DNA from: Auanema rhodensis
Taxonomy: Eukaryota > Animalia > Nematoda
Reading direction: 5' to 3'
DNA length: 60,707 nucleotides
NCBI GenBank assembly: GCA_964057225.1
Contig: CAXKVF010000019.1
Coordinates: 1 to 60,707, forward strand
Both the position numbers and the translations under genes were made by a program. The stretch's first letter is position 1. Every line of letters begins with the position of its first letter. The notes beneath the pieces were generated by a model. The model did not search any database. It was not told the DNA's origin and worked only from the letters and a program-made list of their open reading frames with translations. Below, in pieces: positions 5,994-8,103 of the stretch.

Positions 5994-7949
5994 ATGTTTA
6001 CAGAAAAACAGGAAACGATCCGAATTTGGCGGGAAAAGTTAACGAAGAATGAAAATAACAGTGTTATTCATTATTGCTTTTAATCTCTGTTTTATTAATC
6101 AACTTCTTATTATTTATTCAATTTTCTTTTTCAGTTCTCCGACTAATGAGGCAAAACTTTGATTCTGAACGTCTCGAGCGTTTTCGTAAGCAGCATATTT
6201 TGAATAAAAGGATCAAAAACGAAATAAATAAAACATCTTGTGGGTTTGCAAAATTTCACCAAAAAACATTTTTTTTTATGCAGATGTTCGCAAACATCCT
6301 GATCCTGCCGTTCAAAAAGAATTATATAATTCTTTCCCTAAAGGCGTTAGTTTAAATAAGAGATTGGAGGACTCGGAATTGGATGTTTCATCGACCTCGA
6401 ACGATCAAAAATGCGAGGCAGTAGAATGACAAGCATTCAAAACAGTAAGTCAAAATTAAAAAAAAATTAAACATAACGTTTTCAGATTTGTTCGGATTCG
6501 GTCTAGCACATGACCCCATCAAGTTTGTTCCACAAACAAGTGCAGGACGAGGCGACATTTGCCCAATTTGTTGGAAATATGATTCCAACATTAGCAGGCA
6601 TTTAGTAAGTTTCTTTGTTATTTTTTATTGTTAATTATCAAGGAACTTGCGGAGAAAACAAAAGAATTAAAAGAGAAATTCTGGAGCAACCGTTTTTTCC
6701 AAAAGTCAGAATTTTTGAATCTGACAAACGGAATGAACAATAAAAAAACTGAAAAAATTAGTTCATAAAATGGAGAAGTAAGTTCTAGAAAAGTCTTTTT
6801 CAACAACTCAAAACATTTAGCGCTGGAATAATGTTCACGCCTCTTGATGAAACAACCGATTGTATCAATTTGAATCCTAGATTTGATAAGAACGGTATAC
6901 ATGACCCAAATGGTATAGCAGATTACTACAAAGTATATGTTAAAGGAGGAAAAACGTTATTCGGACATGTCTCTTCGAAATTCACCTCCTCAACAGGTTT
7001 TCATTTCATGCTTGTATTTGAACATTTCTATTTTTAAGAATCCAATGCTATCAACAAACATAAGTTTGGAGGTCCCCTGAACAATCATAGTTACAAACAC
7101 TATGACGCTACTATAAAATTGATGGAATAAAATAAAGGTTCGGAATAACATTACCAAAAGACAAACATTAATATAATTTAGAAAAATGCGCTAAAAGCAG
7201 ACAAAGATATTGAAGAAGTACAGGAAATTTTTTGGAAATATGCAGAGAAAAATGACATGAAAGACGATAACATGGCATATTTCTATCTATGTCATTGTCA
7301 GATTTGCCGAGGTTTGCAACACATAATACAACATTCAACTGTTATTTTATTTATTAGGTCGTTGTCATTGCCAGGCATGCAAAGGTTTTCTATACCACGA
7401 CATGAGTAAACGAGATACTGCTCATAAATTATCTAATTTCTTTAAAATATCGAATTATTTTAACGGAATAGAAATGGATTGGAAAAGTGTAACTCAATAC
7501 ATTTTCGAGAACGAAATAAGTTACATTAAATCAGAACTAAAGGTAATCATAAATAATATAAAACAACTGATTGAGATATATTTCAGAGTCAGAACGATCT
7601 GGTCAACATATTTAATAAATTGAGCACAACTTCAAACTACAAGAAGAAACTCAACAAAATTAAAGACCTGATCAATAAGAAAAAAAGGAGAAAGACTCAC
7701 ACAGGCGAACGTATACGACATAGTTAAAGCACTGACCAAAGATAGAAATAACCGTGAACAACAAGAAGGTAAAATACATTACATCGAATACATTCATGAA
7801 TATAATAAATTTCAGTTGATTATGGGAATTTTCGGCAGCATTCTAAATTCGTCCATCATTATATTCAAGAACCAGGAGGATATCAATTATGCCCTAGTAG
7901 ATACGGGGAAGCACAGAAGCAATCTCACAGCATATTATATAAACTGTGA
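5994..7949 (+). pseudogene. Spliced 11-exon gene of unknown function (~500 codons) with Cys/His motifs; frameshifted, probably decayed
   Basis: Hand-built model. GT..AG introns at 6061-6134, 6240-6283, 6445-6485, 6605-6642, 6778-6820, 6997-7038, 7138-7181, 7312-7357, 7543-7586 and 7769-7815, with mostly compatible phases. Spliced peptides include CPICWKYDSNISRHL and CHCQICRGRCHCQACKG. AATAAA at 8020. Frame breaks near 6410, 7128 and 7685 (all copies) and 6745 (this copy only). Confidence 0.7.
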
Positions 7950-8103
7950 TACAAAAAAAATCAAATTACTTAAAGACAATTATTATAATTCGTGATATAT
8001 GTATAATTTTAACAACATCAATAAATTGATTGAAACTTTGTAACTAATTCTGTCTATTATGAAACTTGTTTTTTAAACTTTGTTTTATAATAGAAAAAAA
8101 AGT

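Follow-up and report, generated by a model that had tools for sequence, protein, structure and literature searches.

The window analyzed here, by which we mean the whole 60,707-nt stretch of DNA, carries minus-strand rRNA genes that were identified with Rfam as a nematode-type rDNA array. In every second unit of the window the 28S gene is split by an insertion approximately 400 nt from its 3' end; the insertion of interest is a 9.6-kb element (positions 2676 to 12264) that is present in three copies in the window and approximately 30 copies in the assembly. On either side of it stands an 18-bp direct repeat, GGTAAAACTAACCTGTCT, which is 28S sequence and is located at positions 2658 to 2675 and 12265 to 12282; the left flank matches an uninterrupted 28S gene through position 2675, and the right flank resumes 18 bp earlier in the 28S gene. 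The gene-like stretch that forms the subject of this report (5994 to 8025) lies within this element, on the plus strand, directly after ten 281-bp tandem repeats (3141 to 5967). Its position inside rDNA, antisense to the rRNA, had been recognized in an earlier reading of the sequence alone (the sequence-only reading). The assembly contains approximately 30 copies of the stretch at approximately 100% identity, together with a few diverged partial copies. The copies are spaced 17.7 kb apart where inserted units are adjacent and 25.7 kb apart where inserted and uninserted units alternate, and this mixed spacing suggests block amplification within the rDNA array. The 25.7-kb higher-order repeat was seen in the window and on contig C75, and the 17.7-kb spacing was seen on contigs C63, C51, C56, C66, and C17.

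Full-length genes related to those in the stretch are carried by the 11-kb C42/C20 element, the giant C31 element, and the C12 element; they have homologous exons, the same intron positions, the finger, and the post-SET motif. The C31 element occupies the same 28S site and has the same 18-bp repeat at both junctions, and the C42 element has the same site and repeat at its right junction, the only junction matched. The sequence-only reading had proposed a search for intact paralogues between the same termini; the site and the repeat are shared, but past the 18-bp core the arms of the 9.6-kb element differ from those of C31 and C42, and the assembly contains no full-length partner with its arms. 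The internal DNA similarity of the 9.6-kb element to C42 is confined to positions 5957 to 6417; with tblastx, noncoding repeats common to the 9.6-kb, C31, and C12 elements were detected, and none were shared with C42.

Ten GT..AG introns were recognized in the stretch, measuring, in order, 74, 44, 41, 38, 43, 42, 44, 46, 44, and 47 nt, so that nine of them fall between 38 and 47 nt; five end in TTCAG, and four of these end in TTTCAG. The introns are 70 to 82% A+T, versus 57 to 70% for the exons, and exon phases agree across most of the introns. An AATAAA signal is located at positions 8020 to 8025, 25 nt past the true stop. The intron lengths and ends and the AATAAA following the product are as the sequence-only reading had given them; however, the single product of approximately 500 codons that it had built from these exons does not hold, as the stretch consists of two gene remnants, the first ending in a TGA codon at positions 6427 to 6429 and the second beginning with an ATG at position 6426.

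Comparison with four diverged copies revealed a marked coding signal. Differences at codon positions 1, 2, and 3 numbered 20, 16, and 43 against a chromosomal copy at C8:4.42 Mb (described below), 15, 13, and 19 against C12, 5, 5, and 10 against C42, and 0, 0, and 9 against C31, and dN/dS ranged from 0 to 0.43 across these copies. On C31 and C12, the paralogues of exons 6b to 9 show 52 to 62% protein identity and the same exon boundaries and phases; the lack of any homologue with the same intron positions, which the sequence-only reading had named, together with a lack of spliced reads, as a finding that would count against it, is therefore not what we observed. The third-position bias and the exon boundaries shared with distant paralogues indicate coding DNA that evolved under selection, and, as judged from these comparisons, the stretch is coding DNA shaped by past purifying selection, beyond what chance open frames would provide. 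The retained introns had been taken as an argument against retrotransposition, and we agree: all of the mini-introns are kept at the paralogue positions, the intron loss of a processed (retro-copied) pseudogene is absent, and a processed retrocopy is ruled out.

The first remnant, gene 1', comprises exons at positions 5994 to 6060, 6135 to 6239, and 6284 to 6429 and has 106 open codons that end at the TGA at 6427 to 6429; this frame is open in nearly all copies. Over positions 5957 to 6417 its DNA is 93% identical to that of the C42/C20 element, in which gene 1 is a separate small four-exon gene whose basic fourth exon is preceded by a 46-nt intron and has its own stop. Gene 1' lacks the 3' part found in this 11-kb relative, namely, the end of exon 3 and the basic fourth exon. 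In the C42/C20 element, gene 1 and the large gene, gene 2, lie 2.7 kb apart, with approximately 2.4 kb of tandem repeats between gene 1 and the finger exon of the large gene. In the window, homology to C42 gene 1 stops at position 6417, and homology to C31 gene 2 (96 to 98%) begins at approximately position 6421; across this junction (junction 1, 6417 to 6421) the reading frame is not maintained, and the stop of the first reading overlaps the start of the second in an ATGA at positions 6426 to 6429. Since the homology switches at this point and the two genes are separate in C42, what had been read as the first of several frame breaks is a deletion junction that produced an out-of-frame fusion.

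The gene 1 sequence of the window is a truncated member of a family of small open reading frames (ORFs) that we refer to by their HPDP motif. The C12 and C31 elements contain weak relatives of the HPDP motif and basic tail in the form of unspliced ORFs, and a Pfam search with the HPDP ORFs gave no match to a known domain or family. Small ORFs with the motif HPDPxxQ..SFxxG and a Lys/Arg-rich tail recur in the elements at L019:6256-6609, L018:9046-9363, and L013:6758-7456.

The second remnant, gene 2', starts with a mini-exon (6426 to 6444), followed by an intron (6445 to 6485) and the finger exon (6486 to 6604). The CPICWKYDSNISRHL motif reported in the sequence-only reading is present, and the finger itself reads C-x2-C-x9-H at positions 6560 to 6601. 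The motif and the missing second His were thus correctly noted, but the assignment to the C2H2 type was not upheld: the classical pattern (C-x2-4-C-x12-H-x3-5-H) does not fit, as the window keeps only C-x2-C-x9-H, and the finger of C31, C12, C42, and the C8:4.42 Mb copy is C-x2-C-x9-H-x3-H, with the second His opening the next exon, so that the finger is split by an intron. No Pfam finger match was obtained for the window finger exon. In the window, approximately 66 nt have been lost at positions 6624 to 6633, taking with them the true intron 4 acceptor and, from the start of exon 5, approximately 19 codons, among them that of the second His; C31 and the C8:4.42 Mb copy retain these nucleotides, and the 38-nt "intron 4" is a leftover of the loss.

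Downstream of the finger, the exon 5 remnant (6643 to 6777) includes an A-run at positions 6742 to 6748 with one extra A and is followed by a fused exon 6 (6821 to 6996) that contains a second junction at approximately positions 6878 to 6882 (..NLNPR|FDKNG..). Junction 2 is in frame: the sequence passes from a point within exon 6a straight to the opening bases of exon 6b, with microhomology of a few bases. In C31, exons 4 to 6a are matched at 91 to 100% and, approximately 2.9 kb further on, exons 6b to 9 at 52 to 62%; C12 matches exons 4 to 6a at 50 to 62% and then, approximately 2.8 kb further on, exons 6b to 11 at 81 to 95%. The intervening central exons, approximately 2.8 kb in length, are conserved among C31, C12, C42, and a second C8 locus at 5.499 Mb, and none of them had a match in the window. 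This absence includes the SET-N exon (GVFA..GT.VT.YYG), which in the relatives sits just upstream of exon 6b, inside the interval deleted at junction 2. On the basis of this exon homology, gene 2' is best described as a deletion derivative of the large zinc-finger/central-region/SET gene of 28S-specific elements.

The central region of the relatives contains motifs that recall a tyrosine recombinase (ENGQRPEV, SIRNSAANT, and GTMAH..HVxV[YF]). A six-frame genome search with the tyrosine recombinase family PF00589 matched only unrelated chromosomal elements, and a four-sequence profile of the putative catalytic exon from the central region of the relatives found nothing in the PDB. Any putative recombinase region (R..H-x-x-R..Y signature) is absent from the window together with the central region, and the part that might have served mobility is the missing central 2.8 kb or so.

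The remainder of gene 2' consists of exon 7 (7039 to 7137), with the NHS motif of SET-C; exon 8 (7182 to 7311), with an E-I-F-W-K-Y motif and the first CxCxxC; exon 9 (7358 to 7542), with the second CxCxxC in a post-SET cluster; exon 10 (7587 to 7768); and exon 11, which in the conserved frame spans positions 7816 to 7995. The window motifs NNHSYKH, EIFWKY, and CHCQICRG/RCHCQAC align with the relatives and with Steinernema proteins at the SET-C NHSxxPN motif, the E-L-x-x-x-Y motif, and the post-SET Cys cluster, respectively. In a six-frame genome search, Pfam SET (PF00856) scored 26.5 bits, above the cutoff, on C8:5499234-5499734, 22.1 bits on the C42/C20 exon, and 17 to 19 bits on the C31 and C12 exons; the C12 exon that scored 17.0 bits is 90% identical to window exon 8. 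The window exons alone gave no Pfam match at E values of ≤10, and many single exons of the relatives likewise gave only noise; the assignment to SET is thus a transitive one, made through the homology of close relatives. All searches were made with single exons or with natural open frames.

The locus at C8:5497000-5502000 (L043) that includes the highest-scoring SET match is a full-length chromosomal gene 2 relative that has both central-region and SET exons and no intron between exons 8 and 9; it may be a domesticated gene or another element copy. Here exons 8 and 9 form one natural open frame of 143 amino acids (L043:2634-3065), and a search of 1.84 billion representative proteins with this frame gave six matches at E values of ≤0.001, five of which carry SET. 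Three of the six are Steinernema proteins (KAK0418810.1, KAK0418807.1, and TKR71989.1) with a full Pfam SET domain (50 to 52 bits), aligned over NHS..GEELxWxY..CPCxxCxGxCxCxxCKG; they show 38 to 42% identity over SET-C and post-SET, including the unusual cluster CPCxxCxGxCxCxxCKGxxxH. Two other matches, P0002 and P0006, are short unnamed fragments, and the match to P0001, a repetitive protein with implausible Pfam matches, was disregarded. The Atlas neighbors were SET families, and a PDB sequence search with the 143-amino-acid ORF returned only weak noise (LubX and Fab). Given the SET-C motifs and the alignment with the Steinernema SET proteins, the tandem CxCxxC, for which the sequence-only reading had suggested a metal site, is indeed present but corresponds to the post-SET motif of a SET methyltransferase domain that is truncated.

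The reading frame of gene 2' is broken at several points. A TAA at positions 7128 to 7130 interrupts exon 7 in all rDNA copies, whereas C12, C8, and C31 are open at this position; exon 8 is 5 nt short relative to C12 and C8 near positions 7190 to 7196; and exon 10 has 4 additional nt at positions 7680 to 7690 and 1 additional nt at approximately position 7741 relative to C12. The two junctions, the loss of approximately 66 nt, the TAA, and the exon 8 and exon 10 shifts are common to all of the approximately 30 rDNA copies, as far as each covers the respective site. The extra A in the run at 6742 to 6748 is private to the first window copy, as it is absent from 29 of the 29 other copies that cover the site. 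By phase arithmetic, gene 2' in the consensus copy is open for 179 codons, from the ATG at 6426 to the exon 7 stop. The three frame breaks that had been described as common to all copies must therefore be revised in both directions, since the A-run break is private and the breaks that are common to the copies, including the 7128 to 7130 stop, the 5-nt shortfall, and the 4-nt and 1-nt gains, number more than three. The frame previously assigned to the last exon, ending at position 7947, was also incorrect; the conserved frame, as judged against C12 and C31, ends in ...KLLKDNYYNS, with a TGA at positions 7993 to 7995. Long-read errors could in principle explain single-base lesions within A-runs, but four of the lesions lie outside simple homopolymers or involve several bases. 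Compared with the other copies, rDNA contigs C57 (L039), C67 (L040), C30 (L038), and C52 (L037) show many scattered single-base indels; these are probably long-read errors and call for caution with homopolymer frame breaks in this assembly. As indels of this type occur on several rDNA contigs, the extra A at 6742 to 6748 may well be another.

Compared with the full-length genes, the window gene has lost SET-N and approximately 2.8 kb of central exons, is joined to a remnant of gene 1, and contains a stop and several frameshifts. We consider it very probable, from these sequence comparisons, that the stretch is a pseudogene relic, comprising the broken and internally deleted remains of two genes that are intact in related 28S elements. 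The related full-length elements, inserted at the same 28S nucleotide and flanked by the 18-bp repeat, carry a large gene 2 antisense to the rRNA, with mini-introns and four parts (a CCHH finger, the central region of approximately 2.8 kb, a SET domain whose post-SET motif has a double CxCxxC, and a tail at the C terminus), and at least the 11-kb element also carries the small four-exon gene 1, with its basic tail, in the same antisense orientation. In this explanation, one deletion joined gene 1 exon 3 out of frame to a 5' exon of gene 2, and a second, in-frame deletion removed the whole central region and the N-terminal part of SET. The rDNA lineage later gained the finger loss of approximately 66 nt, the exon 7 stop, and the exon 8 and 10 frameshifts, and this broken form then rose to approximately 30 near-identical copies.

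Because SET-N is missing and the remaining sequence contains a stop and frameshifts, a methyltransferase cannot be encoded; the stretch most likely does not work today, and we infer that the relic makes neither a functional methyltransferase nor a functional recombinase. The suggestion that the stretch might represent a decayed, element-encoded DNA-binding or mobility protein was correct insofar as the exon-by-exon homology points to a decayed element gene; it was not correct in postulating a single DNA-binding or mobility protein. The copy number appears to have risen mainly by turnover of the rDNA array (unequal crossing-over and conversion) rather than by transposition of the element itself, and the lack of a full-length partner with the same arms, together with the 17.7-kb and 25.7-kb spacing, fits such a spread.

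Internally deleted, nonautonomous derivatives of DNA transposons are known from the Ds/Ac system and from KP and the P element. The 9.6-kb element resembles these derivatives in that an enzyme gene is internally deleted and in that there are approximately 30 copies, compared with one to four full-length copies per lineage. It also shares the target site and the flanking repeat with its full-length relatives, as expected of a deletion derivative; however, it does not share terminal sequences with an autonomous partner. Unlike in Ds/Ac and KP/P-element, a full-length partner with matching ends was not found, and mobilization in trans is hypothetical, with array turnover as an adequate alternative. 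It is conceivable, but in our judgment rather unlikely, that the 9.6-kb elements are nonautonomous riders that are moved in trans by the full-length finger/central/SET protein acting on the 18-bp core alone, with the truncated finger or the gene 1' product perhaps modulating the process. If true, this arrangement would amount to a two-tier parasite system inside the rDNA.

A different possibility is that short products, namely, the 106-codon gene 1' protein and/or the 179-codon gene 2' fragment (part of SET and a finger that lacks its second His), continue to be produced and used; by analogy with truncated transposase products elsewhere, they might regulate or compete with the proteins of the full-length elements. 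The gene 1' frame that stays open in nearly all copies, the consensus gene 2' frame that is open from the ATG at 6426 to the stop at 7128, and the retained AATAAA are compatible with this idea, as is the dN/dS of 0.27 between the window and the C8:4.42 Mb copy, both of which have the two deletions. The latter value could mean that the shortened gene was once selected, or that conversion brought in selected sequence. However, the finger is one zinc ligand short, the SET fragment lacks its N-terminal half, and the low dN/dS is explicable by patches imported from selected full-length genes, while the near-identical copies give no power to detect current selection. We therefore regard the continued use of short products as distinctly unlikely.

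The sequence-only reading had also considered a captured host gene, which would be carried as passive cargo. Apart from the fragments P0002 and P0006, the closest relatives outside this genome are indeed ordinary chromosomal SET proteins of Steinernema, encoded on contigs of 5.9 and 16.7 Mb, to which the similarity extends over SET-C and post-SET. However, these proteins match the SET part only and lack the finger exon, the central region, and the C-terminal tail. Within this genome, every exon relative is located in a 28S element, is a copy of one, or, at C8:5.499 Mb, has the element-type central region, and at least three lineages of elements at the shared 28S site carry the gene as a regular constituent. 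The cargo explanation is thus very improbable for this locus, although at a deeper level the SET module has kinship with ordinary nematode SET proteins. A single functional gene of approximately 500 codons and 11 exons, with three sequencing-type frame breaks, would account for the splice phases that are consistent across most introns, but it has practically no chance of being correct in view of the stop at 6427 and the switch of gene at junction 1, the exon 7/8 phase mismatch, the exon 7 stop, a last exon in the wrong frame, and the nonnative architecture that results from the missing central exons and SET-N.

The order of events within the pseudogene relic can be read from the copy at C8:4.42 Mb (L011, C8:4416000-4425999, approximately positions 4804 to 8741), which consists of decayed repeats and the gene region of the 9.6-kb element. 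This copy has 281-bp repeats upstream, shares both junctions with the window, and keeps the finger complete and exons 7 and 8 open, although other lesions are private to it; in the 10 kb examined, no rRNA gene encloses it, and it is truncated at a position matching window position 7239. Since it shares the junctions and yet has an intact finger and open exons 7 and 8, the deletion derivative formed first, and the other lesions arose later in the rDNA lineage, before amplification.

Sequence has also been exchanged between element lineages, as indicated by incongruent distances among segments. Over positions 5994 to 6417 the window differs from C42 by 6.4% and from the C8 copy by 12%, and over 6421 to 6623 it differs from C31 by 1.5% and from the C8 copy by 7.4%; over 6883 to 7239, C8 and C12 differ from each other by 1.4%, compared with 7% between the window and C8. 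Each patch shared with a full-length element stops exactly at a derivative junction, and this coincidence of patch borders and junctions requires at least one exchange after the derivative had formed. Gene conversion limited by where homology ends is the likeliest process. The large gene of C12 is itself chimeric (C12:44000-58999): after its own exons for the N-terminal and central parts comes a window-type tract (6878 to 8175, 93%), and then a second, C31-type SET 3' half that is 98% identical to C31.

The nearest published analogue of this element family is the 28S-specific whispoviruses of crustaceans, which are large DNA elements located at one conserved 28S motif with an 11-mer target duplication and which carry multiexon tyrosine recombinase genes with introns (PMC10871703). 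The main text of that study mentions neither a SET domain nor a methyltransferase (PMC10871703). Whispoviruses differ from the nematode elements in phylum and in 28S site, and a recombinase in the nematode family was unsupported by the profile tests. Our literature search found no paper describing the full-length gene or its elements. New here are the defective amplified form, the exchange pattern, and the link between the SET module of the elements and the Steinernema SET proteins. The stretch is thereby settled as a defective copy rather than a new protein, and the result serves as a warning against annotating it as a coding gene. The relatives form a decay series that runs from full-length genes, through an old chromosomal copy with both deletions, to amplified and further broken rDNA copies; that the defective form outnumbers the full-length form, and that patches have moved between lineages, is informative about the life of 28S-specific elements in the rDNA array.

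Two minor features of these elements were also recorded. The giant C31 element contains a 178-amino-acid ORF (L018:7910-8443) with a HELIH-type motif and no Pfam match. In addition, a G+C-rich near-palindrome (GTGCGGGGGCGGCTAGCCCCCG-like) that is present in the 281-bp repeats recurs downstream of the gene, at window positions 8100 to 8135 and 8335 to 8370, and the same near-palindrome adjoins an HPDP-like sequence in the C31 element (L018:9509-9634).
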